In this document: positions 4,381 to 27,721 of the stretch, in pieces
Numbering within the stretch: position 1 is the first letter of the stretch
Layout: every line of letters begins with the position of its first letter
Assembly (NCBI GenBank): GCA_000708835.1
Contig: DF237034.1
Span: 1-64,000, forward strand
Reading direction: 5' to 3'
Length of the DNA: 64,000 nucleotides
DNA from: Klebsormidium nitens
Taxonomy: Eukaryota > Plantae > Klebsormidiophyceae
Position numbers and translations under genes: made by a program
Notes under the pieces: generated by a model
The model's database searches: none
Told to the model about the DNA's origin: nothing
What the model saw: only the letters and a program-made list of their open reading frames with translations

Positions 4381-7300
4381 ATGGGCATGGGCGCAGCTTC
4401 GAGCAGCCGCTGCTTTGTGCGGCCGCCCCTGCTGTCCTGCCGAGGCGTGTTGGCGGTGGAGAAATGGGGGCAGGGAGGCAGGGCGGCAGTGCAGGCTGGG
4501 GGGAGCATCAAAGTGGGCGGTGGTCATGTCAGCGTGGCCACACCTCCAGCAGTCCGTGCACGAGGCATTGCAGCAAGTGCTTTTGTTCGCCATGGGTGTC
4601 TGGGCGGCGCGCCATGGGGCCTAAGTGTCGGCATTGTGCGTTGCAGGACCTGGTTCTCAGCCTCGCAGCCTGGTCCGCTGCTTGGGACCAGCTTTGATTC
4701 ATTTCAAACCCAAGCTTTGGCCGTTGAGGCAGCACAGGTAGAGGAGTCAGCCCCTGCGGAGGCCTCCTTGCAAGACTCTGGGCGCGGGCCTGCTGTGGAC
4801 TGGGAGGTGGGGCGCTGGGTAGTGTTCTCGGACCTGCACCTGAGCCGGCGCACGCTGGACATCTGCCTGCAGACACTGCGCCAGGTGCACGCAGAGGCCG
4901 CCGCCAGGTGCACCACCCACATCATACACCTCATACTAGTTTCGTGATCTGACTCACTAGTTTGTGGACAGGATTTTGATGAATGTGAGCTTGAAGACTG
5001 TGAAGTGCAACGCGCCCCTGATCTGCCCTGCCCTTGACTGACGTGCCCCTTGTTTGGGCAGGAATGCGGGCATCCTGTTCCTGGGGGACTTTTGGCATGA
5101 GCGGGGGGCGCTGCCGGTGGAGCCGCTGAACCAGGTGCTGCAGGTGATCCAGGCATGGCAGCGCCCCACGCTCATGATCCCAGGCAACCATGACCAGGTC
5201 AGGCCGCCAACCATCCCACTGCTTTCTGCACCACCAGCAGAGCTTGGCATGGAAGGCGGCTATTCTGTTCTCCCAGATTCTTAAGTCCAGCTGCGACCAC
5301 CACGTCTCTCCATACACATATGTCATCCTTCCATGTCCAGTTCGTGCCGCCAAAGGGGTGCCACTTTCAACAAGATTGCGCAGGGCCTGCCGCTTGACGA
5401 ACCCACTTTAGCTTGATTCCAGAAGTGGGCTTACACACAAAGTGCCGTGTTCCTTTTGGCAGGTCAGCATTGGTGGTGAAGTCCACTCGCTGACACCCCT
5501 GGCCGCGGCGTCCCCCTTCATCCGAGTCCTCCACGAGCCCAGCGTGGTCCAGGGCGCCCTGTTTGTCCCGTACAGGCGCGACCACCAGCTGGTGCTGGAC
5601 GCCATGCAAGCCCACCCCGACGTCAAGGCCGTCTTTGCGCACATTGACGTGGTGGGACGGCACACCCTCCGACAGCAAACGCGCAAACTATGATTTCTTT
5701 CTGGTTGAACAAACACAGACTAAGTGTTACTTGATCAATCTCAGCCTGTGAATCTGTCAGGTATGAGCGACAGATGCATCTGACCCCATTTTCTGAGCCG
5801 CGTAATTTTTCCATTCTACCTTTTAGAGTGAAAAACTCCCCTAACGTCGCATCTGGTCCCATGTCTTGCCGCAGGCGGGCGCCTATCTGAACAACTCGTT
5901 CCAGGCCAAGGACGGCATCGCCCCGGCGGCCCTCCGCAAGGACGTGCCCATTTACACGGGCCACTACCACCGGCCCCACACGGTTGACGGCACCAGCGTG
6001 CGCTACGTGGGCTCCCCCTACCAGGTGTCGCGCAGCGAGGCCGGCCAGCAGAAGCACCTCCTTGTGCTCGACCAAGACTGGCAGGTGCGCAGTCCCGCTC
6101 ATGCAGCAATTGCGGCACCAGGGTCAGGCCAAGGCACAACCCATTGAATAAACGAAGTATACCGCCGAGGTACTCGATAGCACCCCCCCCTGCAGGTCGG
6201 AAGTTGATTTCAGCTTGCTCTGCCATTCAAAAGCTTGGTCTATCGTGGCTGAGGCTTCCCACAGGGCGCACAGCTGGCGTTGACAATACTACCGGCCCCG
6301 CTGCAGGAGGAGGAGGTGATCCCCCTCTCCGTTGGGCCGCGCCACTTCTCGGTGTCAGGAGCCACTCCCGACCTGCCAGAGGACCTTCGGGCGGGGGACC
6401 GCCTGCGGTGGGAGGTGCCCGCCGAGTGGGCGCTCCTGGCCAAGCAGGCCCGGCCCAGCGCCAAGGCGGCGCCTCACCCGGTGGCGGACACCCTGGTGAG
6501 GCAGGCGGGGACCGACCCAAGATCTTGCACCCCCATGTGTCCCTCTTCTTTGACGTACTCAGATGTGGCGTCCTTGGTCGAAGCAAGGCCCTCGATCCTG
6601 TGATCCGTGGCCCACCCGTTCCTCGCCTACGTCCTGATTGCGCAGGTCAACCGTCTATGGTGGTGCAGGCTGACTTGCGGCGGCGCGGCGTGGAGGTAGA
6701 GGTGGTGTACCCCCTGCCGGCCAGCACGCCGCGCATCCAGAAGGCGGAAGAGCTGGTGAGCGCACCACCTCCCATCCTGCAGGCTCGTGCAAACAGGAGG
6801 CAGGAAGCGCAACCCAGGGGGGTGTGGTGGCGGCTGTTGAGGATTGATCATAACACGAGAGCTCCTGTGGCTTACTATAAACCCTTTGGAAAGCGATCTC
6901 GATCGATCGACGTCAGTCGCCTCCCTTAAGTCCACCGAGATGCAATGAGTAACCGTTTCGTCGACGAGGTACGGTTCGGAAAGATTGTCGCCGAAGCACG
7001 TTCCCAGGCTGTCGCATATGGCATGCAGCACTTCAACGCGGTTACTGACCGTGTCTTCTCGCGCCGTCGTTGCTGTCGTCGCAGGACGCCTTTTCGCTCT
7101 TCTCCCAGTACGCTGCCACGGTGGGCCTGTCGCCGCCTGCTCTGGCCCGCGGCCACGCCCTGCTGCGCGAGCTGGACCTGCCGGCCCGGGCGCTGCGGCG
7201 GCCGCGCGCGGACGTGGTCTTCCGGCGGCTCGAGCTGGAGGGGTACGGCCCGTTCCTGGCCCGTACCGAGTACTGCCTGGGGCCCGCGCGAGGCCTGCGC

Positions 7301-10300
7301 GCCATCACGGGCAGCATCCAGGACGGCGGCCAGGGCTCCGACAGCAACGGCGCAGGCGAGCGCCGTTCGGCGATCCTTCTCCTTGCAAACTCCCATAGCG
7401 GGAGCACGGTGAACTCTGAGTAGGATAAGGCTTTGTTTGTTTTGTTGAGAATGTCCAGAGCCTCTCGATGCTGCCATTTCGTCGTTGTCTCCGTTCAAGG
7501 CAGCTGCTGCAATTGCCTTCTCTGCCGTCACACAATCGTCCTGCCGTGACACCCGGTGCGGCTCACCTGCGCCTGGCTCCGTGTCCTGCAGGCAAGACGA
7601 CTCTGGTGATGGCCCCGCTCTGGGCCCTCACAGGTGCGCACGCACACCGTCTAGCCTTCTCGGACACCAGACATCGATGCTGCATCGAATCAAACATAGC
7701 GCTTGGTTTTGAGTTAAGTTTCTGAGCCTTTTGCTTTACTGGCTGGCTGTGCGTGTAGCTTGGTCCGCCAGCTCCCTTGAGCCCCCTACCTGTGCGTGCG
7801 ACGCCATAATCGGCTGTGTCTTTGGTGCAGGCTCGACGGACGCCCGCCCCGGCGCGGAGGGCGGGCTGCTGCTGGGGGAGGTGGTGCACCCCGAGGCCGC
7901 CAGCGCGCGCGTGCGCCTGGAGGGCGACGTCAACGGGCGGCCCTTCACAGTGGAGCGGACGGCCGGCCGCCGCTCGGGGCTGCGCTTCGAGGTGGACGGC
8001 GAGGACCGTACGCAACAAGAGATGCGGCTCACGCAGGACAAGATCAACGACCTCCTGTGAGCACGCCCGCGCAGGCGCGCGGCCGCTGCCCGTGAGGTGG
8101 AAGCACTTGCTGCAAACGGCGGCTCGAGCTCGCTAAAATCTTCATGCGAAAAGGAGCAGCGATACACCGATGTTGCATCTAGTGGACCCGTTGAGCTGAG
8201 CCCGGATTCATCGTCGGTTTCCGCCATGCAGGGATACGGCCTCGTTGCGCCGGATCGCCTTTCACGGTCAGCACGCGGTGGGTGGCCTCCTCGAGGCCAA
8301 CGACAGAGAGCTCAAGGTACGCCTGCGACCGTGCGGAATTCCTCGCATTTGAATGGCGCTTTTCTTTGATAGCCTCCTGGCATACGGATCTCAAAACCAT
8401 GCCGCCTTTGTTTAGAACGACACGACGTGATTGTCCAGCTTCCTGAGGAGGGCTTTCGTGGTGGCCCCTTGTGTGTTGGCTGAGCGGTGTGTCTGCGCTG
8501 CGGCGTGGCAGGAGGAGCTGTCGCGCATGGTGTCGATGGAGGTGTGGGTGGCTGCGGCGGAGGCGTGCAAGCGGCTGCTCAAGCAGCAGCGCACGCACGT
8601 GGAGCACCTGCACGGCGCCGCCGCCGAGCTGCGCAACAGAACCGCTGCGCTGGAAGCAGAGGTGAGGGACACCGCCGGGCCACGTCAGCACGACAATAGC
8701 AAGGGCGCTCTTGTGCACTCTGTGACCTGCTGCTGGCATCTCGTGTCCGAGGACTTGTTTCCGGGTCTGTACAGCTTGCTGGGTGTTTGCAGGCTGGCGG
8801 TCGCACACGCTGCCAATTGGTTGCAGGTTTGTTGACAAGTCCCCTACTCTTTCCTCCAGATTGAGCGGACCGAGTCCGAGCAGCGGCAGTTTGAGCAGTG
8901 GAAGGCGGCACAGGCGTCCCAGCTGGATGGCCAGCTGGCCGCCACGCGCAGCCAGCAGGCGACGGCTCTGCAGCGGTGCCTGGAATCCGCGGTCCGCCTG
9001 GATGCGTGCATCGCCGCGACGGCGGGCCTGCTGACCGACTGGGAGGACGCCGCGCTGGGGGACGTCCTGGGGCCGCCCGGGGCGGGCATTATGCGGCGGG
9101 GGTGTCGGCGGAGGAGGAGGAGGCGGCGGCACTGGCGCAGGATGCGCAGATGGAGCTGGTAGACAAACGGGCACAGGTGCAGGCCGGGCCAGCAGGGAAT
9201 CACGACGTATTTGGAAAACGAAGGCCTGAGCTTTTTGTATTGAGAGCGTGTATTCCTACCCTTACTACGTTCCCCAAAGGCTCAGCATGATGAGTTCCTC
9301 GGTTCGGAGGCTTTGAAAGTCTCGGAAAATCATGCTGTGTCGCGCTGGCATCAATATGCTTCTTGTCGGAGAAAGTCACAGCTTGCAAAGGAATTGTGTG
9401 ACCGGACTGCTATGCAGACCGTTTGAAACCCGAATCACCGCACCTTTGCTTGTTCTCCGTTCCGTTGGCGTCCCTGACTGTCCGCTCAGCCACGTGCTCG
9501 CTGGGTTGCGCAGGCACGCAGTGCTGCTGCGGCGGTGGAGGCCGCGCGCGCCCGGCTGGCATCGTTCACGGCGGCCAACGCGGAGGCGGTGGTGTGCGAG
9601 CGCTGCCTGCAGCCCGTCACTGGGGAGCACCTCGCGGCCAGCGTCGCCGCCATGCGCTCCGACCTCCAGCACGAGCAGGCGCGCCTTGAGCAGCTGCGAC
9701 AGGTGTGAATCACAGTTGGCTGGGGGCCCTACGAGGGGAATTCCAAATACGAGTATAGCCACTGCACCACCGGCCAAGCAAGTCTGCTTTGCTGACAACC
9801 TTCAAAGTGCTGACTCACGTGGCCTGACATGTGCGCTGCTTCAACGGGCGGCTCCGTATCTTTCGAAGTCCGGCTTGGCTCGTGGGCCCACTCTGGCGTG
9901 TCGTGCGCTGGTGCAGGAGGAGGCGGAGATGGAGGCGGTGCTGGAGGGCGTGCGAAGTATCCTGGAGGACCTGCGCACCACGCGGCGGCAGCACGAAGCG
10001 CGCCGCAGGAGCGACGACGAGCAGAGGCGGGCCGCCGCCAGGCAANNNNNNNNNNNNNNNNNNNNNNNNNNNNNNNNNNNNNNNNNNNNNNNNNNNNNNN
10101 NNNNNNNNNNNNNNNNNNNNNNNNNNNNNNNNNNNNNNNNNNNNNNNNNNNNNNNNNNNNNNNNNNNNNNNNNNNNNNNNNNNNNNNNNNNNNNNNNNNN
10201 NNNNNNNNNNNNNNNNNNNNNNNNNNNNNNNNNNNNNNNNNNNNNNNNNNNNNNNNNNNNNNNNNNNNNNNNNNNNNNNNNNNNNNNNNNNNNNNNNNNN

Positions 10301-12427
10301 NNNNNNNNNNNNNNNNNNNNNNNNNNNNNNNNNNNNNNNNNNNNNNNNNNNNNNNNNNNNNNNNNNNNNNNNNNNNNNNNNNNNNNNNNNNNNNNNNNNN
10401 NNNNNNNNNNNNNNNNNNNNNNNNNNNNNNNNNNNNNNNNNNNNNNNNNNNNNNNNNNNNNNCGACGACGAGCAGAGGCGGGCCGCCGCCAGGCAAGAAC
10501 GGTGAGCACGCGCCATATCTGAATTGAGGTTCGAAGACGTCATGAAAAGAAAAGCTGCGAATCTTAGCTGTCACATTAAGATTTTTCAGTTCATTTTTGA
10601 GCTGTCACTCTAAAAGGTATTTAGGCGCTTGGGTACGAGGAGCATTAGCAAGTTCGGAATGGGCATACTGCTCGTTGTTCATTGACATACCATGCCTGGT
10701 TGCTCTGCTCCAGCACTTTGACACGTGCCACGTGGTGCTGCGTGCAGGCAGGAGCTGCAGCAGGCGCGCAGCCGGCTGGCGGCGGCTGAAAGAGAACGGG
10801 ACGACGCGCGGGGCCTGGACGTCGCCACGTTTGATGCCCTGCGCCGTAGCACGCCCGCGGGTGGCCTCGCAGAGGACGCCGCGGGTCAGCCCTCGGCCCC
10901 CTCCAAGAGGACTCCCATTGCGGACCGAGCACGTGCCTCTTTGGATGAGCTCCAGCAGGCGACGTCGGCGGTGCGGGAGGGTCACCATGCCGCTGTGGCG
11001 GCGGAGGCGGCCGTGGGAGAGCTGGAGCGGCGGCAAGAGGAGGTGGCGGGGAAGCAGGACCCACACGCGGCGCAGAGGGACACGCTGGCACGCATGCACG
11101 CTGATGCGCAGGTGGGGCAGCGGCACAACAGTGTGTCGGCCAATGGGTCTCGGCACTGCCGGCAAAAGTGTCCACCCGTTGCCCGTTGCGTAGTATTAGC
11201 ATCAAGGAAGAAAGTACTCGGCCCGTGCAAAATCCACAACATTTCCTCTATAACTTTGTAGTCGAGGTCTTTCACAGCAGATGTCTCGCTTTGAAAGGCC
11301 GTTTGCTTCTGCAGCCGGTTTGTGCTTACGGATCTATCCTCGATTCCTCTGATACGTAAGGGGGAGGTTTGCTGGCCGCATCAGCCTCGTCCATTGCCGC
11401 TATCCAGGCGGAGCTAGCGGCGCGGGAGGCTGCCATCGGGACAGGCGAGGCGGAGGTGGGCGTGCTGCGCGCGGTGGAGGCCGCGGTGGGCCTGGCGGGC
11501 ATTCAGAGCTTCGTGCTGGAGGGCGCGCTCGCGGAGCTGGAGGCGCGCACGGCCGCGCTGCTGGACACGCTCTCGGGGGGGACGCTCGCGCTGCACCTTG
11601 CCGCCACGCGTGTCGGCAAAACCACCAAACGAGAGCAGGTCAGACCCGTCCAGATGCGCTCGCGGCAGAGCTTGGGATCACAGCGGATGCTGCGGAGTGC
11701 TGTAACTGCCAGTCCTTTGATAGCACACTGCGGATGCATGCCTTATCGTGCGCTCGGGCCAGCCTCTTGTAAGGAGGTTCTGGTCGCGATTTGCAAAACC
11801 GGGTTTTGCATTGCCGCTGGTTTTACCGACTTCGCTTCGGCTTGACCCGCTCCTCTTCCTACCGCCCGCTTCTCGCAGGAGAAGATCGACAAGGTGGTCC
11901 GCGTGCAGCTGGGCGACGGCCGCGTGGTGGACCGCTCAGTGCGCCAGCTCAGCGGCGGGGAGCGCCAGCGCGTCGCAGTCGCGCTCCAGCTCGCGTTCGC
12001 CGACTTCGCCGCGGAGCGCAGCGGCGTGCACTCCGACCTCGTCGTGCTCGACGAAGCCTTCCAGGTCAGCGTCACAGATGGGGCAGCCCAACGGCCTCCT
12101 AAACATCTGTCTCCACGTTGGTAGCAGCAGTCTCCTGACCAAACACTCTGTTGGAAGCTAGCATAGTCAACCCACAACTTTCCGAGCCGTCAAACGTGGC
12201 AGACAGGACTGTTGCGCAATTGTGTTGGACGGCTAACGCTATTTTTCGGCGTGTGCGTGCAGCACTTGGACACGGCGGGTCGGTCGCGCATGCTGGCCGT
12301 CCTGCGCGGGCTGGCGGCGGGCAGCGTGCTGGTGGTGAGCCAGGCCAACGGGGAGCTGGCCGGCATGTTCGACCTGGTCGACACCGTCGTGCGGGACGCG
12401 CGCACCGCCACCGTCGTCGTCACCTAG
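4381..12427 (+). CDS. SbcD/Mre11-type metallophosphoesterase fused to an SbcC/Rad50-type SMC ATPase, with an N-terminal transit-peptide-like extension (~18 exons)
   Basis: Exons approx. 4381-4907, 5062-5197, 5463-5651, 5875-6084, 6307-6495, 6669-6755, 7085-7355, 7592-7633, 7831-8056, 8232-8316, 8512-8661, 8860-9176, 9514-9702, 9917-10501 (spans the N gap), 10748-11111, 11408-11638, 11879-12064, 12263-12427. Nuclease motifs FSDLH, LGDFWH, PGNHD, AHIDV, GHYH, YVGSPYQ. ATPase motifs: Walker A GSDSNGAGKTT, Q-loop FHGQH, zinc hook CERC, signature LSGGERQR, Walker B/D-loop LVVLDEAFQHLD. Confidence 0.9.
10046..10462. other. Assembly gap (N run) whose two flanks repeat the same ~33 nt
   Basis: cgacgacgagcagaggcgggccgccgccaggcaa is present at 10013-10045 and again from 10463. 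Confidence 0.95.
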
Positions 12428-15830: not shown

Positions 15831-18800
15831 ATGGCCGACTCCACCGGGCTGCCTGACGTCCTCCAAAGCGCGGCCTGCTTGGCACCCCCCGACGCGCCTC
15901 TCGAGGGCCCTGCGGAGTGGAGCGTCAGCGAGGCATCATCGCACGAGGAGCACATACCGCAGACAGCCTTCCAGCCGGCCGGTGTCTCTTTCGAAGTGAG
16001 GCCCAACGAGGAACTGCCCCAGCAGTGGAGCCCGCCTTTCCAGCCGCTGCTGGCGGTGGGCCTGCCGCCCGCAGCGCAAGTCCTTGTGCCCGACTCGGGG
16101 GGCGTGGTGTGGCCGCCAGCGGGCTACTCGGCACCCCCAACGGAGGTGCGGCCCGCGGTGCTGGCGCACGACGAGGCGCGGGCGGCGGAGCTGCAGAAGG
16201 GGGCGGAGATCCTGGCCTTCTCGCAGCGGCTGGGCCTGCTGGACCTGCCCCTGCCGGAGGTGCCCGTGCCGGAGGGGCCCATCTTTGTGCCCACGGGGCC
16301 GCTGTTTGCGCACGGAGACTCAGACGAGAGCGGCGGGCGGGGGCTGCCAGACATGGAGCAGAGCCAGAGCCAGGGGAGCACTCCGCTGGAGGACAGGGCA
16401 CCCGGGCAGCATGCCGCGGAAACGGAAAGCGTCGACCTAGAACGGGCCACGCAGGAGGAGGCGTGCCCGATTGCCAAGCCTATCTCCATGGAGCCGCCTG
16501 AGGCCCAGTTCCAGAAGCCGGTCTACGTGGCAGCCACCGCGCGGCCGTCTGACGCCGGCGTGCGTGGCGCGGGGGCCTCGGCGGAGGCGGTGCTGGCGAG
16601 CCCGCCGAACGAGGTGGTGCCGGAGCTGGACGTGGCGCGGCTGCTGGGGCGGGGCGAGCTGGCGGACGACGAGCGCGTGCCCATCTGGAACCGCGCCGCG
16701 CAGCGCAAACTCACCGGCCGCTGCGGGCCCATGCGCAAGAACCTCAAGGCCTACCTGGACAAGGTGAGCGCGCGCGCCCACTAGGGGACGCAGCAGGTTT
16801 TTGCATCTGCAAGCAGCGCGTCTGCATGACCGAGCTGTGCAATCTGCATTTGTGTCCACCTCTGCTTCGTAAGCCGAGGGCGAAACGGCATCTTGAGAGA
16901 CAAAGCTGATCAGTGTTAAAACCTACTGCACCTGACTGGTTTCGTGTACCGGTGGGCTTCTTGCTTCGCACTGCTATCTTCTTCGCGAGTTGTGCTCACT
17001 TGTGTCGTGTTTCTTCCTCAGCACCCCGAGTGCGAGATCTACGACCACCAGCAGTCCGGCCAGTCCACCCCGGCACAGGCCCCCGCCGCCAAGCGACGCT
17101 CCGTGCAAACCGCACACCGGTCAGGCAGCCACAAGCGCGGGTCGGCCCAGGCTGAAGTGGAAGCCCCGAGCTCCTTTGTGCCGGGCAAGCGACGGGCTAC
17201 GCTGAGGGAGGGCTACTACCGGGCACTGCAGGATGGCAAGGTGGCGGGGGCCTCGGACTGGGGGGAGCAACCACGCGGTGAAGAGGGGAGGGGCTTTCCG
17301 TCAGGTACATAATGACGGCAGGCCATTAGTACACCTTCTTTACAGGGCTCCCGGTGCCAGAATTAGTTACCGTCTGCTTTGTGATCAAATTGCACGAGCG
17401 CTGTACAGGATGGAAGCAGTTCGAGATTCGAGGTTTAAGCTCGTCGAGACACTCCTCACAGGACCTTCACTGTTGAGATTCTGCAGACGTAGGTGGCGGA
17501 ACAAGACGACTGTGCATCTCTTCGCAGCGTGCTCGGAGTTGACTGTTGCACGATTGCAGGGCCCTCTTCTGACCGCGATGGCGGTGCACGTGGGCCGTCC
17601 GGCGGTGTCCCTGCCAGCCTGAGGCCCGAGCCGCGCGCGCTGTCTCCGCTCAGTGAGGTACCTGCGCGTTGGGACCTGGCCTGGGCCGCGTACGGCATGC
17701 CGCGCTCCTCGAACGGCTTCGTCAGCGAGCGCACGGAGAGAAACAGCGCACGTGATGGGGCGCAGCCGGAGCTGGAGGCAAGCCCATCGGGGGGACCGAA
17801 GAGCCGGGAGAGGAGCCCCCCCGGAGGAGGGGGCAAGAGGAAAAAGATGCCGCTGGAACAGACGGTGAGCCGGGCAGCCAGAGGGGCGAGAGCGCGGGGA
17901 GAGGTTGAAAGTCTAAAAATTTGACTTCGCGGATTAACGGCAGGGCATCTCACAAGCTGCAAACAACGAGCTTAATCTGCTTGGGTTCGTTCTGAGTATG
18001 TTTGTCCTGTACCTTCACAGGCAACGTCTAATGCTGCTATAAACACCAGGTAGAACGCAAGCCTTCCGGTGCCCCCGCTCGCCTGCCCGGATTCCCCGCT
18101 GTTGCTCTGAGCCTTCCTCCTGGCGTGCCTGGTTGCAGGCCGCTCTGCAGGCCCTGGCCGACTCGGTGGGGTGGAACAGCCTCAACATCGAGGCGCGCGC
18201 CGCCACCGCGCGGCTGTGCGCCGAGTTCGGCATGACCTTGGGCCAGGTCAAAAAGTGGTTCTCCAACCACCGCCCCAGGGTGAGCCTGCCGCCAGCAAAG
18301 ACCGCCTTCCAGTCGTATCTCTTTCTGGTCAGGAAACGCTTTGCTGGTCACTTGGTTTGAAAAAACGACCCTGTTGTCATTTCTTCTTTCTCGTGCAAGA
18401 GACACCTCAAAGAGGTGACAGAGCAGCACTGCAGCACATGCTCAACTCCAGCCAGCTACTTCAGTCACTGTTCGCTTAGTCACCCAACTCTCACCTTACT
18501 CATTTCTCGCAGGATTTTGCCTCTTTCAGCAGTCCTCGCACCCCCTTGGACGTGTACTCGTCCCGCCAGGAGGTCTTCCTCCGGCCGCCTCCTCGCTGGC
18601 CCAGCCCCACCCGGAGCGGCACTCCGCCCCCAGCCTCATCGCGGGGCGTCTCGCGCAGCCCCTCCCCCGTTCTGCATGCCCTGCTGCCCTCTGCCGCCTG
18701 CCAGGCACCCCGCTCAGGCTCGCTGCAGGAACCTCCGGCCAGCCTTCCGTCCCCGCCGCCCGCGCCGCTGAGGGCCCGCTCCCTCGGCCTGGGCTTCTCG

Positions 18801-21800
18801 CTGTCGGGCAGCCTGGGCCGCTCCCCGCAGGCGCTCGCGGAGGCCCCCAGCAGCGGCTCCCTCCAGGGCGCGCCCTTCTTCGCCTCGCCGGAGCTGCCCC
18901 CCAGCCCGGGCCTGCGTGGCAGCCTGCACGGCCCGCTGCCGCTCGACTTTCTCTCGCGCGAGTCCCCGCACGACCTGCTGGGCGCGCACCTCTCGCTGGG
19001 GCCGCCAGCCGACGAAGCGCTCCTCGCGGCCGCGCCCCTGCACGCGCACCTCAGCCTGGCCGCCAGCCAGGCCCCGACCTCCAGCCAGCCGCCCGCCGTC
19101 GCCCCGCCCTTCCACGGAGCTGGTCCCGAAGCGTCCGCGCCCTTCTTCGGAACACCCGCCGATGCCGCTGAGCTGGAGGAGGGAGAGCACACAGTGGTCG
19201 CAGAGGGACTCCACGAGGAGGAGACTGATGAGGGGGAGTGGGGGCACCAGGAAGAGGTTGAGACACGCACTAAAGAAGGCTGGTCCGCAGAGGTGGCAGG
19301 TAGGGCAGACGAGAGTGACGACCAGGACAGAGCGGGCAGGGCCCTCGGCGGTGCGGAGCGTGGGACAGCAGGCGCGCACAAGCGAGGCGGGAGCTTCGGC
19401 GGGTTCGATTTAGAGAGCAACGACGCGTCGGAGCTGGATGCGCTGATGGAGTGCGAGGAGGAGGCGGGGCAACGCAGGCTCACGCCCGAGGTTGACCACG
19501 GCAGACACGGCAGGCCAGCCCTGCGCGACACGGAAAAGGCCGGGGCGATAGCCAGAAGCTTCCAGCAGGCATTCACGGATCGGACGGTCCGGATGGCTTC
19601 CCTGGAAGCGAGCAGAAATGTGTCTCGCGGCTACCGATCCATGCGGCAGGAGACAGCAAGCGACACGTGGCAGGCGCCGGGGCGTCGTGACGAGGAACAA
19701 GCAAGAATCAGTCTGACGTCGTATCGGCTGAAGCTGCGGCGCGAGGTGCGGGAGAGGGTGCCGGTCGGGCGCAGTCCCAGCCCGTACAGCCTCGGAAGCA
19801 CGCTGCAGCGGTCGCGGCAGGCAGCGCTGGAGCAGCAGCGAGGGGGCGCGGCGCGCGCGGGGAGAACGGAGGAGCGGCACGGCGACGCGCGGCCCGCCCG
19901 GCAGGACAGCCCAGGCAAGCCGGAGCGCTGATGACGAGGCATTGCTCATGTTTGGACTTAGTCACATGCTGCTTCAATGCCTTTCACTTGACACACCAAT
20001 GAGGCTTTCACTGCTGCTTTACATTTGACAGCACTTTTGAAAATAGTTGCGTTCAAATCTGCATTATGACGAGAAGCTTGCAGTCTCATCAACCGTCAGA
20101 GATCGCAGGGTGGCCGACCCTGTGTCGTGCAGGCGGCCCCCCCGGCGCGGACCTGCCGGCCATGCTGCGCAGCACGGGGTTCCGCGGGTCGGGCCCGCGC
20201 AGCCGCGTGCAGGCGGTGCTCTTCGAGAAGGCGCTCACACTGAGCGACACCAGCCACCTTGGCAGGATCGTCCTCCCCAAGGTCCGCCGCCCCGCGCTTC
20301 CCAGCAATCCAGCGCCGCTTCTGGATCGCTTCTGTCCGAACGGCCCCTCCGTCGACATGCTCTTCATAAAAACAACGAAATCTGTGTAAAGTCGGACAAC
20401 AGACTCATCTACTCCGTAGGTGGATACGAGCAAAGCAGTTGTGTTTTGCGCAGGGCTGTGCGGAGAAGTACCTCCCCCCCATGGACGAGAAGGAGGGCCG
20501 CCCCATCGTGATCGAAGACAACTACGGCGCGCGCTGGTGCTTCCGCTATCGGTAGGGCCCCCGCAACGCCGCTGTTGCAACGGAAACTTCGAGTGGCGGC
20601 GTCTCCTACCATCAGGGCTCTGCCTTTAAGGACGAGTTTTAGAGTTCTGTTTGAGCAAGCGAAGCTGGTGCTACTGCATTTTTGCCTGCTTTTTCGCGGG
20701 ATTGGGTGGAAGGTGAATCAGTCGAATGTGCCCTTAGGGCTGCTTGCGCCGTTTGGGATTTGACGCAGGTACGTTGTGGCGGCTGCAGGTTCTGGCCGAA
20801 CAACAAGAGCAAGATGTACGTGCTGGAGCACTCGGGGGACTTTCTGCGCGCGCACAGGCTGCGGGTGGGCGACGTGGTGCAGTTTTGCCGGTCCGAGCTG
20901 GGGCACCTGGTGAGTAGATGGGGGTGGGGGTCGGGCCGCTGTGCAGGCCGCGACTGCGCTCTGCGAAAGCAAAGGGCGTCTTGAAAATGACGTTTGTCAA
21001 ATATTTACACCCTGCATCCACGATGTTGCGCAAAGAAGAAGGCCGTTGGATCGACCTACACAGGCAGAGATCGAATGGTCGTCCTCAATTTTCAAAGGAC
21101 ACGTTTTTGTGTAACACTTTGTGTTTTCAAAAGCACGAGATGCTGATTCAGATGCGGCAGACAGTGACGGCGAGCAATTCTCATGCAGATCGTGCAGGGC
21201 AAGAAGGAGGCGGCGCGCCAGGCTGCGGGCCTGGCTCCCGGCGGCGCCTCGCCGCGGGCTGCCCCTCTGCGGGCCCCCCGCGAGCTGCGGCCCCCCACCT
21301 GCAAGCGCTCCCCAGCTACAAGCCGCCCGCGCAGGCGCGGCGCGCGGGGCCCGCTAATCCCCCACCCCGGCGTGGCCAGCTTTGACGAGGTGCGCGCCAG
21401 GGCACGCGAGGTCAGCATGACATCAGAGGAGCTGCTGAGGAGCTCCCGGGAGATCCGGGCAGAGATGCGGGCCTCTCTTGCGCGGAAGGAGGGCGGGGGC
21501 GTCTGCTCAGCGGCGCCGTATGGATCCGACGAGGCGGACGAGCAGCAGTTCGAGGCGGACCCGCAGAAGGAGCAGCGGCAGGGCAACCACGAGGAAGAGG
21601 AGGAAGAGCAGCTGCAGGGGCCGGTGGGCGCGCCGGGGCTGTACGATCTCCGGGCCGGCTTCTCTCCGCCCCGGCCTCCGTCGGTGCCCCCCCTTACCGG
21701 TGAGGGGCCGTTCCGGCTTGCGTCGCTGTACCCCGCTCACCTGTATTCGGAGCTGGCCCGCAGCAGCTCCCCGGGCGCCGTGTACCAGCCCATCCCGCGG

Positions 21801-22559
21801 CCGACCCCGCACTACTTGGCGCCGCCTTGGAGCGGCGCACTGCAAGCCTCGTTGTTCCCCTGGGCGGGGTCGTTCGCAGGCACTCCGGGCTTTGGCCTCG
21901 AGACTGGGCCACCGGCGTTCGGGGGGGTCGGTCTGCCGCTGGGGGGATTCAATCTAGAAGCGGCCCCGCCCGACGTCACTTATGCTGGCTCTCATGAGCG
22001 TGACGAAAGAGAGACCCCCACGATGGGAGAGATTCACGAAGGGCGCTGGCAGCGTCCGGTAGATGCAGAGCGGGGGGAGGCCTCAGACGACTCGAGCAGA
22101 GAGCGGGCCGCAGGCAACTCGGAAGAAGGAGCACAGGCCGGTCAGGAGGCGGGCCGGGGCGACGCCGCTGCAACGATTGGAAGAGAACTGGACGAAGACA
22201 GGCACGGCGAGGTGAAGGATTCGGACGCGGACGGCAGTGCTGGCAGGGGTGCTGCGGCAAGTGGGGGCTTGCAAGCGATGCCTCGGGGGGCGGGGATGGA
22301 TGCCGTGGAGCACAGCCTGGCACTACTGAGCGGGAGGGGGGGCCGCGACATGGCCGAGGCGGGGGACGCGCAAGGTGGAGGGCGGGGTGCCAGAGGTGAG
22401 CGGCAAAAGAAGCCCGGCGGAGCTCCGCAACAAGGTTGGACTTCTGAGACCCACACTGAGAAGGGCTTAGACTGCGTGGATCAACAACCGTTCTTGAGTG
22501 GGACACCAGCTCCCTGTCCTAAGGCTCCCCTTTTTGCCGTCCTGACAGGCAAAGGGTGA
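15831..22559 (+). CDS. Multi-domain transcription factor: BRK domain + atypical homeodomain + LAV-family (ABI3/FUS3/LEC2/VAL-type) B3 domain (9 exons)
   Basis: Phase-consistent exons 15831-16763, 17022-17304, 17560-17864, 18139-18279, 18513-19914 (GC donor), 20133-20281, 20454-20551, 20789-20909, 21189-22559. BRK-like [39 protein letters not shown]; homeodomain KRKKMPLEQTAALQALADSVGW...LCAEFGMTLGQVKKWFSNHRPR; B3 LFEKALTLSDTSHLGRIVLPK...WCFRYRFWPNNKSKMYVLE...LRVGDVVQF. Confidence 0.85.
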
Positions 22560-23832
22560 AACGGATCACTTGGTCAGTAGCCGATAAATATCGTTATGTG
22601 CACTCCCACTTCACGTCAAATATCTTCTCCTGACTCCGCTTGACACCTTCCTTGTAAAGAGAAAATCTTAAGAGCAGCTCGACCGCGCTACTGAATGGCC
22701 ACGCGCTGCTGTGCCGCTCACAGACTCGGACTCGAATGAACAATTCTTTTGCATGATTTGTAGCTGATGGCTCCCCAAGCACCAGCGCAAACACGGAGTC
22801 AGCTGGCTGATGCAGCGCTTCTCAAAGCCGGTTATGGCATCATGCAAAGGTCAACGTTGGGCACCTGTGCGACACTAGGAAGGGAAAGGTTTGTTCCGAG
22901 GTATAGGGGGCAACTTTGTGCTGACAAAAGGTGTGTGCAGTGTTCTTCAAGAGAGATCCGATGGGGTATGTGCGGCCGTAGGTCATGAGTCAGGTGGCAG
23001 TGTGGAGGACCAGGGGTCTAGTGAGCCGTAAGAGAATTACGGGTGTCGAGCAATGAAACGCTGACAAATGTGCAATCAGAGGCCCAATGACATGAGTGGA
23101 ACTTGAAACACGTGAATTGATTGAATCAACATCGATCGAGTGGCCTCGGGCAACGTAAGCACATTGAATCTAAATGCATAACGACCTAACAATCTTATCG
23201 TTAGCCATTTTTCGCATGTCGATCAGCCAATTCGTCATACTTTCAAAGCTCGAGTGAGACTAAAGCTAGTCATGCAATGAAGGAAGCTAGTAGGATGTCC
23301 GAAGGGGTAAAAACATGGTACCCCCTTCAGTATCAGGTCACCTTCTGCCCTCTCTCTGGCTAGCACGGCGTGCATGCATTAATATGCATGTGAGACATCG
23401 ATGTCGATCTCACAAATACCATTATTACCATGAGATTCATTATTCCATGTAATGGATTATAAGGAGGGTAGCTAGGACGGATGATCTCGATATCTAAAAA
23501 CTGAGAAGGTCGACACGCCACGGGATCGCTTAGCTTGGATTCAGAGTTGAAACCTTATATTCGACCCCAATTCGATCAGCGTTTTCCTCAAATTCGACAT
23601 ATCGATGCAGTTGTGCTCAGTCAGCAACGTTCTTTGTAGCTTTCATTTGTTTCTCGAGATACTTAGTCGCATTCTTCAACTTATTATTGACCAAGTTCGT
23701 TTGTCAGTGAGACAGTATTCCCCTTCTCGACAAGCGCTCTTGATGAAAAAGGCAAGCAGTCTCATCTTTGCACTAAGCGTGATCTGAGAGTCTACTTTCT
23801 CCTCATGTTACGGATCGCCGCTGGTAGCAGTA

Positions 23833-26800
23833 CTACTCCTTCTCGATATCCCAGGTGTCGACATTCTCAAAGACGCTCGCAATCTCTCCGACCTTTTCCC
23901 ACCAATCTGGAGGAGGCTCGGCATCTTGAGAGACAGCTACCTGCGGAGAAGAAACGAGAGAGCAACAAGCCAAATTCAACTTGACCTCGCTGTTACGACT
24001 TGACCTCGATGTACAAAAACTTAGCGAGATGCTACCGTGTGTGCCTGTTACCCGCGGTTGACCCGACTGCTTGTGAGACAGAGGGTAGTAAGTTGCTCAT
24101 ACCCCGTGAACGAGAACCCGTTTCCTATCATCGCGTCCTCCCTCCCTTACCCGCTGTCTTTCCCCGTCTTGGTCGCTTGCGTGAGCGTGTGGCGGGGCGG
24201 GAGGGGTCCGCCGAAAGGCCTCGGGCAAGAGGTGCGGCGGCAGCGGACGGATCGAGAACCGAAAGTCTGCACGACAGGGCGCCCGAGGTGAGGCCCGTCC
24301 AGCCAATTAAACCGACCTGTGGTGCGAGGTGGCTGGTGAGTGCATACAGTGTCTCATTTACTGGATCGAGGCTGACGCAGCTGGTCGTGAATCCTCGTTC
24401 CCCAGCACAAGTGTGGTTGGCGCCCCTGGCCGTAAGGTGCTTTCTGGGGTGGGCCTCACCTCGGCAGTCGGGGTCGTGACACTTTTGGTAGTAGCCCGCC
24501 AGCAGGAAGTCCACCACGTACATCACTGCACAATCAAAGCCCCGCTGTAGGTGCGCAGGAGCACCAGGCAGCGCAAAGGCACGGCAGCTTACCCAATTTG
24601 TCATTTACCAGAGAACAATAGGAACAGGCCTCGCTGTCAAGAGCGTGCATTTTGCTGCAAAGGCGAGCCCACGACTGTTGCGACAGCTGACCGTTGTTAC
24701 TCTTGTGCTGGCGGCCGATGCGCTCGCAGTAGCGGTTGTTGTCGATGTTGAACACCAGCACGCCGCGCTCTTCAAACAGGGACCAGTTGCGCAGCCGGGC
24801 TGATGGCGGCAACAATGGAGAGCGGACGCATGAGAACCCCGATCAAAGCAGGCAGCGTGCGCCAGGATGGCGGTGCCACATACAACGAATTGCTCCATAA
24901 GGCCACTCAAAAAGAGCAGACGGTGCCTTTCGAAGACAGAATTTGCGCATCCACCGCTTGCGGGCGTGCACCCACCTGGGGTGTCGTCCCCGGTGGCCAT
25001 GTCCTGGATGAAGGCGTCCACCGCGGGGAAGGGCGACGCCTCGGCCACCCGGCTGGCCTTGACCACCGTGCTTCGGGCAGGACCGGGGCGAGCGCCGACC
25101 TCAATCTGACGCAGGTAGCCGGAACAGGTTTCAGAATGAGCAATGCACTCAGCAACCGACCGTCTCAAGCGTTCATCAGTCCTTGCATGCTGAGTGCCCC
25201 GAGAGAAGCGAGAGAACGTCACTGGTGCTCACCTCGTCGAAGACCGTCAGCAGGGTGGCACCGTGGAAGCCGCCAGGAGGACAGATGAGGGCCGAAAAGA
25301 AGACCTCCCGCTCTGCCTGCAACACAACCGAGACAGTTATTAGCAGGAGATCAGCCTTACCGGAGTTACCTCGCCCCTCTTAACGAGCATGTTTCTGCGA
25401 CCTATGCTGGCCCCGTCTTGCCCTGGAATTGTAGAATCTTACATAGTGATTCCAAAATAGCAGGCCTTTCCATATAACAATTATGAAGACAACCATTCTT
25501 AGGAGTGCTTAAAGTCGCAGATAGTCACAGACTTCAACCAGATTCTGTGTAATAGCAGGCCAAGACAGACGAAGGCCAACTCTTGTAAAGCTTCAGACCG
25601 TCACATAATTTAGCGATGGGGGTGCGAGGCTGCTGGTGAGCTCACCAGGTTCTTGCACTTGAAGCGCGGGGTGGGCAGCAGGCGTGCCTTCTTGCCGTAC
25701 TTGCTCGAGAAAGGCAGCCGGAAGGCGCGGTTGCGGCTGTAGACGGCCTCGTCAATCAGCAGGCTGGACGGCCACTCCCCAGCTGCGCCCGTGGCCTCCC
25801 CCGGCTTCCACACAAACAGCATGGCGCAGGAGGGGTCGGTGTCGCGCATGGCGCGCAGGTGGCTGCAGAACTGCGGCAGTTGGAGGACCATCAGAGAGAA
25901 GAGAGTGCCAGCTCTTTGTCACCGAAGTAGTCCCAAACCACTGGGCGAAACTTGCGAAATCAGTTGTGTCGAGTGGATATCATCGTTTAGTGGCAGGTTG
26001 TAGGAAAGAACCAGAAGAAGCTCAGATGGTGACACATGGTATTGTCATGAGGAGGAGTGCACTGACCTTTTTGATGAAGGCGCCCACGTGGGCATTGCTT
26101 TTGAAGCCATGCCCCGGGAGAGGCGCAATGAGATGCCGGGAGAATTTCTCTGCGCACGAGCAGCACGCTGTAAGTGCAACCTTTCAAATCTTCCAGCCGT
26201 TGCCCCTGGGGCCCTCTGACCTTTCAGTCGTCATTGCTCCTCATTCAACCGGCACTCGCCGTAAGTTCTCCCGCCCTGGCCCCGCGCTCACCGTCTGTGG
26301 AGGAGTCCAGCTCCACAAGGGCGTCCTCGCGCAGGGCCAGCCCCAGGTGCTCCTGCACGGCTGTGCTCAGAAGGCGCAGCAGGGCCACCATGAGTGGCTC
26401 GGCGTCCGCAGCGGGGTTGGGGCCCTTGAGGTACTCCAGGTCTAGGTACAGGTGGCATGCGCAGCCCTGGATGTGGAAGCAGAACATTGCATGGGCAACA
26501 CAAAAGACTATAAGTGGGTTGCGTGAGTGGGCTTGCTTTTGTCAATTGCAAGGCTTGGACTGGACGGTCCTGCCACCCTAATTCCAAGGCCTTGCTCGCG
26601 CACAAAATGGTTACGGGGCCTAGGGGAGCACTTCCGTGGGTGGCATTGACAAGAACAGCATGCCAGATGATGGAACTCTGGCTTGCAACGCAAATCTCTT
26701 CAAGCTTGATTGAAGACGGGCGTCAAACTCACCTCTCGTATTATCTCATAGTAGTGCTGGTGGCCTGGCAGCATGCGCTGGTACCTGCAGTTGAAAACCA

Positions 26801-27721
26801 CCCTCTGAAACTTAGCAATTTTACGGTTGACAGCTACTTCTATGTTTGTCACTACTTTGAAAGTGAGCTGCTGGTTAACAGCATCCATGTGTTGGGTCTT
26901 AAGTGTCGCTCTGAACTTCCAAAGTGGCGAAGGGACTTGACAAGAAGCCTTTCCAAGTAGCCCAGCCAACCACTGGCGTGCTCACCTCTGCCAGAAGACG
27001 TCAAGTGTGGTGACCAGGAAACGGCGCCTCCCTGTGGCGGAGTCCTCAAATGTGAGGACAGCCAGCCGATCGGCATCAGCATTCTGGGCATCATGGGCGT
27101 CAGCAAACTTGAATGCCATCTCCTGTGTTGGGAAGATCTGCCACACTGCAGCCCTGTAGAAACAGCCAACAGGAAAAACAGTCAAGGCTAACAAAGGCCC
27201 CATCAAGGAATACCAAAATTATCTTCTCAGTCGATCCCTGCTGTACACATACAGCTTCCCTCCTTGATGGAAGAAGATACAGCGGCAATGCTGCAGCAGA
27301 TTGAGTTATTAAGCGCGGCTGACCTTGCTAGTCGCTGCCTCCGAGCTTCTTCTTCTGCTAGTATGAAGTTTTTGTTGGCAGAGGCGATCTGTTTCAAAAG
27401 GGCATGCCACTGTGTCGACGTGCTTCTCTTGCCGTAGAACTTCTGACCACCGAGCGACTTCTTGCAGCGAGCCTGGAGAGCCGCGGATGCATCTCCAGCA
27501 GCGTCACCTGCAGCCCCTGGCTTGCATTCATTCTGTACTACAGGAGAGCGGCAGGATTCTACGCTTGCCGCAGATCTTGCTGCAGCGGCATATCCTGAAC
27601 CACTTGACTTGGTCTTCTCACTTGCTTTCAACCGTGCCCGCTTGCCCGCCCTGTAACAATCAAGCAGCTCACTTGCTTGCTTACTTGAAAGAGGTGCATC
27701 CCCTCCTGCCTCGCTTGCCAT
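23833..27721 (-). CDS. PRIMPOL: DNA-directed primase/polymerase PrimPol (AEP catalytic domain plus C-terminal UL52-type zinc finger)
   Basis: Exons approx. 27721-27324, 27153-26986, 26784-26733, 26466-26292, 26149-26067, 25870-25646, 25316-25233, 25105-24976, 24799-24692, 24525-24460, 24266-24151, 23940-23833. Motifs RRFLVTT, HYYEIIREG, HLYLDLEY (DxE), KFSRHL, IDEAVYSRNRAFRLPFSSK, RYCERIGRQHKSN, YYQKCHDPDC. Confidence 0.92.

Follow-up and report, generated by a model that had tools for sequence, protein, structure and literature searches.

A split gene model in Klebsormidium nitens probably conceals a single regulator with BRK, ZF-HD-type homeodomain, and LAV-type B3 domains

We examined positions 1-64,000 of Klebsormidium nitens scaffold DF237034.1 (assembly GCA_000708835.1), referred to here as the window, in which window positions equal record positions. 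A locus at 15831-22559 on the forward strand is annotated by NCBI as two same-strand genes. Our comparisons favor, with good confidence, a single nine-exon gene encoding a nuclear transcription regulator of about 1600 amino acids that combines a BRK domain, a homeodomain of the ZF-HD type, and a B3 domain of the LAV type. Judged from the sequence, the reference annotation very likely mis-splits a real and well-conserved gene. In that case, the split would keep a regulator with three modules from view in the reference proteome of a key streptophyte alga, and domain censuses of that proteome would count one B3-only protein and a separate BRK-only protein.

Joining the nine exons gives 4803 nucleotides (nt), or 1600 codons, with zero internal stops. 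Exons were joined for this frame check and for comparison with the annotated B3 protein (P0147), while searches and family scans were run with individual exons or with database proteins. As proposed in the initial annotation, all eight junctions are phase-compatible, including that of the GC-AG intron at 19915-20132. Exon 1 (15831-16763; 311 codons) opens with the ATG at 15831, the same start as the 1026-amino-acid gene of NCBI, and holds most of the BRK domain. Exon 2 (17022-17304; 283 nt) carries the conserved block GYYRALQ.G.VA, and the 3' end of exon 3 (17560-17864; 305 nt), SPPGGGGKRKKMPLEQT, supplies the basic arm and helix 1 start of the homeodomain. Exon 4 (18139-18279; 47 codons, 141 nt) encodes AALQALADSVGWNSLNIEARAATARLCAEFGMTLGQVKKWFSNHRPR, ending in KKWFSNHRPR, and exon 5 (18513-19914; 1402 nt) encodes a low-complexity linker with the conserved motifs SRSPSPVLHALLP, FQQAFTDR, and PSPYSL. 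Downstream of intron 5, exon 6 (20133-20281; 149 nt) contains the conserved motif ADLP..STGFRGSGPRSR and the B3 N-arm, exon 7 (20454-20551) adds 98 nt, and exon 8 (20789-20909; 121 nt) encodes the B3 C-arm, FWPNNKSKMYVLEH. Exon 9 (21189-22559; 456 codons plus a TGA stop) encodes a C-terminal region of conserved motifs, namely TSEELLRSSR, PFRL..YP.HLYS, and GGLQAMPR.AG.D.VE.SLA. The pentamer TGTAA is a polyadenylation signal in green algae, and a candidate copy is located on the same strand at 22653-22657, 94 nt past the final stop.

Seven of the donors are GT and one, that of intron 5, is GC. Exons range from 64 to 74% G+C and introns from 49 to 57%, with lengths of 172-279 nt, and intron 5 (218 nt, 49% G+C) is like the rest in both length and composition. 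It interrupts the frame in phase 1, with a donor reading CAG/GCAAGC and an acceptor reading GTGCAG/GC (slashes mark the junctions). The last 270 nt of exon 5 contain 15 phase-1 GT or GC sites, among which the donor in our model is by far the nearest to consensus.

The two annotated genes are separated by 132 nt between the stop of the first and the start of the second. The first (15831-19933; 1026 amino acids) runs through the GC donor into GKPER and the TGA at 19931-19933, a stop that the initial annotation had already pointed out, and is exactly the read-through product. The second (20066-22559; 601 amino acids) carries the B3 domain. Its translation begins at an ATG within intron 5 (20066) and continues through the acceptor without a splice, which yields residues 1-22 (MTRSLQSHQPSEIAGWPTLCRA); residue 23 and those that follow match residue 1022 onward of the fused model without a difference. 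A predictor that lacks GC donors would yield exactly these two models, and the annotated split of one gene is probably due to the GC donor of intron 5. More broadly, the annotation seems prone to broken gene models at GC-AG introns. Taken at face value, the annotation describes a BRK-homeodomain protein of 1026 amino acids ending at TGA 19931 and a B3 protein initiated at ATG 20066 or at a methionine at 20162. In its favor, both models are present in the NCBI annotation of GCA_000708835.1, and P0147 stands in databases as a 601-amino-acid B3 protein. Against it, the 132-nt gap lacks TGTAA and AATAAA, neither of which was found anywhere within intron 5.

Related loci were located by word search with exon 5 and by profile search with exon 1. 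The first (L001) comes from the Logan assembly of SRR23617307 and has a linker about 71% identical to that of K. nitens. Two others, L002 and L004 (to which L003 is identical), come from Joint Genome Institute metagenomes 3300060285 and 3300060284 and have linkers about 35% identical. An SbcC-type gene is located upstream of the locus in the window (4381-12427) and in all three relatives, with weak SbcC_Walker_B matches, and this synteny identifies the environmental contigs as genuine orthologs of the region. The nine exons are collinear in L001, L002, and L004, with splice sites nearly all at matching places, and the complete relatives L001 and L004 have intact frames of 1636 and 1603 codons. 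Identity between species is 60-100% in the B3, BRK, and homeodomain exons as compared to about 35% in the linkers, reaching 86-98% in exon 6 and 100% in exon 8 across the four species. An intact nine-exon frame together with a structure kept in relatives is well beyond chance expectation, and we consider the gene structure and its conservation to be established.

Comparison across these loci argues for one gene. Exon 5 is 1402, 1363, 1546, and 1489 nt long across the four species, each 1 mod 3, and in four of four loci it ends in phase 1 and is paired with the conserved GTGCAG/GC acceptor. L001 retains the CAG/GCAAGC donor, with divergence beginning immediately downstream, while L002 and L004 have a canonical AAG/GTGAGG donor near the homologous place. 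From this pattern we infer that intron 5 is spliced; a strong in-phase donor that is either conserved or swapped for a canonical one argues against two genes. The read-through tail that would end the first annotated protein is not conserved, amounting to 5 codons in K. nitens, 17 in L001, and 59 in L002, while L004 has no stop within the intron. Nor is the annotated start of the second gene conserved: L001 has an ATG elsewhere, L002 has an in-frame TGA 27 nt ahead of the acceptor, and the frame of L004 contains a TAG and lacks an ATG. The annotated N-terminus is impossible in the latter two loci. In contrast, the ADLP peptide, which is encoded upstream of the exon-6 methionine, is conserved. 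The read-through stop of L002 also falls about 110 nt ahead of that methionine. Comparative genomics thus sides with the initial proposal of one protein across the GC-AG intron, against the two-gene annotation.

Domain identities are likewise established. The B3 domain (20216-21218, forward strand) spans exons 6-9 and corresponds to residues 51-155 of P0147, on which Pfam B3 (PF02362) scores 51.1 bits relative to a cutoff of 30.1; exon 8 alone scores 15.3 bits (E-value 0.02). Ranking of the domain against the PDB placed VAL1 (3.3e-28), FUS3 (4.3e-25), and LEC2 (1.3e-20) ahead of RAV1 (1.1e-14), TEM1, NGA1, and ARF5 (1.5e-9). The domain is therefore of the LAV (ABI3/VAL) type, as its C-arm had initially suggested. 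The signature of that arm, W-P-N-N-x-S-[RK]-M-Y, is present in exon 8 as WPNNKSKMY, and the N-arm reads HLGRIVLPK. VAL1 contacts the bases of CATGCA through I307, R309, W349, N351, N352, and M356 (Sasnauskas et al. 2018, PMC5934628). The algal residues at these places are L, R, W, N, N, and M, meaning that five key contacts are kept and I307 is replaced by leucine. Given that the contact residues are kept, the B3 domain is predicted to bind the RY element (CATGCA), and we consider such binding likely. The region upstream of the B3 domain is the STGFRGSGPRSR motif, which is common to Closterium. A metagenome scan with B3 exon 8 found nothing.

The nearest land-plant database matches were VAL1-like and VP1/ABI3 proteins. 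Although the land-plant LAV factors VAL1/VAL2 (HSI2), ABI3/VP1, FUS3, and LEC2 have a B3 domain of the same type, the domains of the land-plant matches are limited to zf-CW and B3, with a homeodomain in none of them, as the initial annotation maintained, whereas the algal gene has BRK and a homeodomain. Conversely, VAL-type PHD and zf-CW (PF07496) domains gave no match on the exons at E-values up to 1 or on P0147, no EAR motif was found, although no formal search was made for it, and ABI3-type B1 and B2 regions were not detected by Pfam on any exon, a scan that had no dedicated B1/B2 profile. Within K. nitens, the AP2-B3-PB1 protein KnRAV (kfl00094_0070) likewise combines B3 with a second DNA-binding domain, but its B3 is of the RAV type, binds CCTG rather than RY, and is joined to other partner domains (PMC10272232). 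Tounosu et al. (2023, PMC10272232) count nine B3 proteins in K. nitens, found the RY motif to be enriched in its auxin-induced promoters, and state that the RY binder has yet to be identified. The gene described here would be a concrete candidate for the missing RY binder of K. nitens.

The homeodomain (17835-18279, forward strand) consists of the last 10 codons of exon 3 (17835-17864) and exon 4. Toward its end, exon 3 encodes SPPGGGGKRKK, invariant in four species, and then MPLEQT, consistent with a basic arm that leads into helix 1. Exon 4 alone matched Pfam Homeobox_KN (E-value 1.8e-4) and Homeodomain (E-value 1.7e-3), both covering helices 2-3, and its helix 3, KKWFSNHR, conforms to the W48-F49-x-N51-x-R53 pattern. 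A three-species profile searched against the PDB returned 45 matches at E-values up to 10, all of which were homeodomains. When the Closterium exons were added to make a six-sequence profile, the top matches were the Arabidopsis ZF-HD structures 1WH7 (0.0017) and 1WH5 (0.0025), with 45 of 47 positions aligned. AlphaFold2 predicted three helices for the 47-residue piece, with a predicted local distance difference test (pLDDT) of 81. A search of the ESM Atlas with exon 4 gave no usable match, and a metagenome scan with the homeodomain exon found nothing.

The resemblance to ZF-HD homeodomains that had been noted at the outset was upheld. We reject the idea that the GW marks an insertion in the loop between helices 1 and 2, because the tryptophan occupies homeodomain position 20, the usual aromatic core site. 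In an alignment that spans helices 1-3, the algal domain and the ZF-HD (PLINC) homeodomains 1WH5 and 1WH7 have in common a GW where helix 1 ends, a helix 2 [LF]C, and a helix 3 K-W. It differs in that helix 3 reads WFSNHRP rather than WMHNNK and in being fused to B3 and BRK. The ZF-HD dimerization zinc finger (PF04770) gave no Pfam match on any exon. Overall, sub-threshold yet consistent sequence evidence supports a divergent homeodomain of the ZF-HD type, and the profile searches rejected neither this call nor that of BRK.

The BRK domain (16659-17054, forward strand) is divided by intron 1 into 16659-16763 and 17022-17054, the latter encoding HPECEIYDHQQ. On exon 1 alone, Pfam BRK (PF07533) scored 22.0 bits against a cutoff of 23 (E-value 1.3e-4). 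This match takes 34 of the 44 profile positions, with the other 10 in exon 2, and the score falls below the cutoff because the intron cuts the domain. We searched a three-species profile of exon 1 against 1.84 billion representative proteins, which matched 126 proteins, nearly all via positions ~280-316. All 116 of the matches that were scanned have Pfam BRK above threshold, and a local hidden Markov model built from 251 BRK segments scored exon 1 at 64 bits. The subfamily consensus, HVTIWNR.E.RKIAGNAAPL.KNL..YL..HP.CEVY.GQD, fits the 3' end of exon 1 and the 5' end of exon 2 (HPECEIYDHQQ compared to HPxCEVYxGQD), which implies that the exon 1-2 splice completes the domain. The BRK call is real on this evidence. 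In a PDB profile search of the BRK region, the CHD7 BRK structure 2V0F scored 0.011; WD40 structures were the top matches and were rejected as an artifact of many tiny DDKTVKLWNR matches.

BRK serves chromatin proteins as a small module for protein-protein contacts. CHD7-9 and Brahma/BRG1 share it with the algal protein, which has a single copy, but the SNF2 ATPase and chromodomain of those remodelers are not in the algal protein, and an exon-by-exon Pfam scan gave no match to SNF2_N or Helicase_C on any exon. The supposed confinement of BRK to animals did not hold, as the relatives of exon 1 that have names come from the red algae Cyanidioschyzon and Cyanidiococcus, where they are called "BRK domain-containing proteins". 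Red-algal proteins such as Cyanidioschyzon CMS028C belong to the same subfamily (IWNR..RK..G..P..KNL..YL..HP.CE.Y), but have BRK in tandem. Neither a homeodomain nor B3 occurs in any of the 116 BRK relatives, one of which includes a Myb domain. The matches to exon 1 point to a large and mostly unnamed protein family (P0005-P0128) with a tandem pair of HVTIWNR-type BRK domains, and a single EukProt transcript has a weak AP2 match. Elsewhere in exon 1, a helical-looking block at 16173-16244 (EARAAELQKGAEILAFSQRLGLLD; residues ~115-138) is conserved in four species and matches no Pfam family.

The closest relatives of the B3 domain are two proteins of Closterium sp. Yama58-4, P0149 (913 amino acids) and P0150 (888 amino acids), at 61-63% identity. 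Both have B3 at the C-terminal end and no homeodomain in their annotated sequences. P0150 shares the TGFRG motif upstream of B3, while both differ from the K. nitens protein in lacking a long tail after it. Using exon 4 as a tblastn query (E-value 2.4e-7), we found homologous stretches in Closterium assembly GCA_947470075.1 at L006 9506-9649 and L007 9665-9808. These homeodomain-like stretches are unannotated and located on the same strand as the genes, about 350-490 nt upstream of their annotated starts. The L006 stretch is 144 nt long, compared to 141 nt in K. nitens, is in phase 0, and is bounded by tccag on its 5' side and gtaagt on its 3' side. The next exon of L006 begins at 9839 and leads into the annotated ATG at 10001 in one open frame, and an equivalent peptide occurs in P0150. 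This open frame makes the Closterium models look truncated at the 5' end; both omit an upstream, in-phase, homeodomain-like exon. A BRK domain in Closterium was considered and rejected, as none was found within 10 kb of either gene. Separately, L006 12770-13220 contains the B3 segment FLPHVE.KEGILIIVEDSIGGQWCFRY three times in tandem, one copy having a stop codon, which looks like local exon duplication into the following intron.

The initial annotation left open whether the architecture is lineage-specific or ancestral, and the answer differs by module. Homeodomain-B3 extends to another streptophyte alga, whereas BRK was found with it in Klebsormidium-like loci only. Given its occurrence in Closterium, the homeodomain-B3 pairing probably predates the split of the two algal classes. 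It is conceivable, though we hold the idea tentatively, that a ZF-HD plus LAV-B3 protein was already present in the last ancestor that Klebsormidiophyceae shared with Zygnematophyceae and land plants, that land-plant ZF-HD proteins, ABI3/VAL proteins, or both arose from it by fission and domain swapping, and that Klebsormidium gained BRK as a link between RY recognition and the chromatin machinery, with the family including the RY binder that acts behind the RY enrichment in auxin-induced K. nitens promoters.

Several observations weigh against a single gene with three modules. Word searches with exons 5 and 9 found no transcript-derived protein across 19914/20133, and the public annotation carries two genes. 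All species have an in-frame methionine in exon 6, one codon apart between loci (AML in two, SIM in two), so a B3-only product may also be made from an internal start. Exon 4 alone falls below both Pfam homeodomain cutoffs (PF00046 and PF05920; 21.7 relative to 24 bits and 18.5 relative to 22.9 bits), and the precomputed record of the 1026-amino-acid product lists a weak BRK match and no homeodomain. Fold searches with the homeodomain were weak (Foldseek E-value ~1; VIA Z at most 3.6) and included unrelated helical proteins among the matches. Finally, the Closterium homeodomain copy reads WLTTNR, and this loss of Asn51 makes DNA binding by the homeodomain uncertain.

We considered how far these observations favor two separate genes. 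The exon-6 methionine, present in four of four species, could serve as the start of an independent B3 protein. Of nine predicted B3 genes, Tounosu et al. (2023, PMC10272232) reported eight to be expressed by RNA-seq, and they also used cDNA to clone predicted coding sequences; their text does not state whether this gene was included in either set, and their supplements list no primer or cap analysis of gene expression (CAGE) entry for the locus. Set against this are the gap, tail, donor, and start positions described above, as well as the Closterium homologues, which carry B3 at the end of long proteins. Two separate genes therefore seem improbable to us. We assign a similarly low likelihood to the locus producing both forms, in which a fused protein would coexist with a B3-only isoform made from an internal promoter or by intron retention, the two acting as an activator/repressor or dominant-negative pair: the early methionine of exon 6, present in every species, is consistent with this, and retention of intron 5 in K. 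nitens would end the upstream protein at TGA 19931, but lineages differ by one codon in where the methionine falls, and the stop reached on retention is itself not conserved.

A single fused protein would have, from N- to C-terminus, BRK, the homeodomain, a disordered linker of ~470 residues, LAV-B3, and a tail of ~450 residues. Short motifs are conserved between K. nitens and its relatives in both linker and tail. In our proposed mechanism, the homeodomain would offer a second DNA contact or a partner contact, and we infer that BRK and the linear motifs may recruit chromatin or co-regulator partners. The protein could thereby link its reading of the RY element to the state of chromatin, much as VAL proteins of land plants achieve through other modules. 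In land plants, B3 factors of the ABI3/VAL type control the maturation of seeds, tolerance of desiccation, and silencing by Polycomb; the form that this B3 type had before land plants arose is poorly documented. For the gene examined here, the initially suggested connection with desiccation or seed programs is speculation.

A literature search found no paper on a homeodomain-B3 or BRK-B3 protein. Green-algal B3 genes have been characterized as having a single C-terminal B3 domain (Han et al. 2017, PMC5379062), and charophyte ABI3-type B3 proteins were set aside and not reported in the study of Martin-Arevalillo et al. (2019, PMC6797205). The homeodomain-B3 pairing connects ZF-HD and LAV, which are treated as unrelated families, and the gene may bear on the origin of both ABI3/VAL and ZF-HD.

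Beyond the locus itself, the window contains a neighboring gene on the minus strand at 23833-27721. It is annotated as encoding 570 amino acids with a Pfam match to Herpes_UL52 (primase zinc-finger), and is probably of the PrimPol type.

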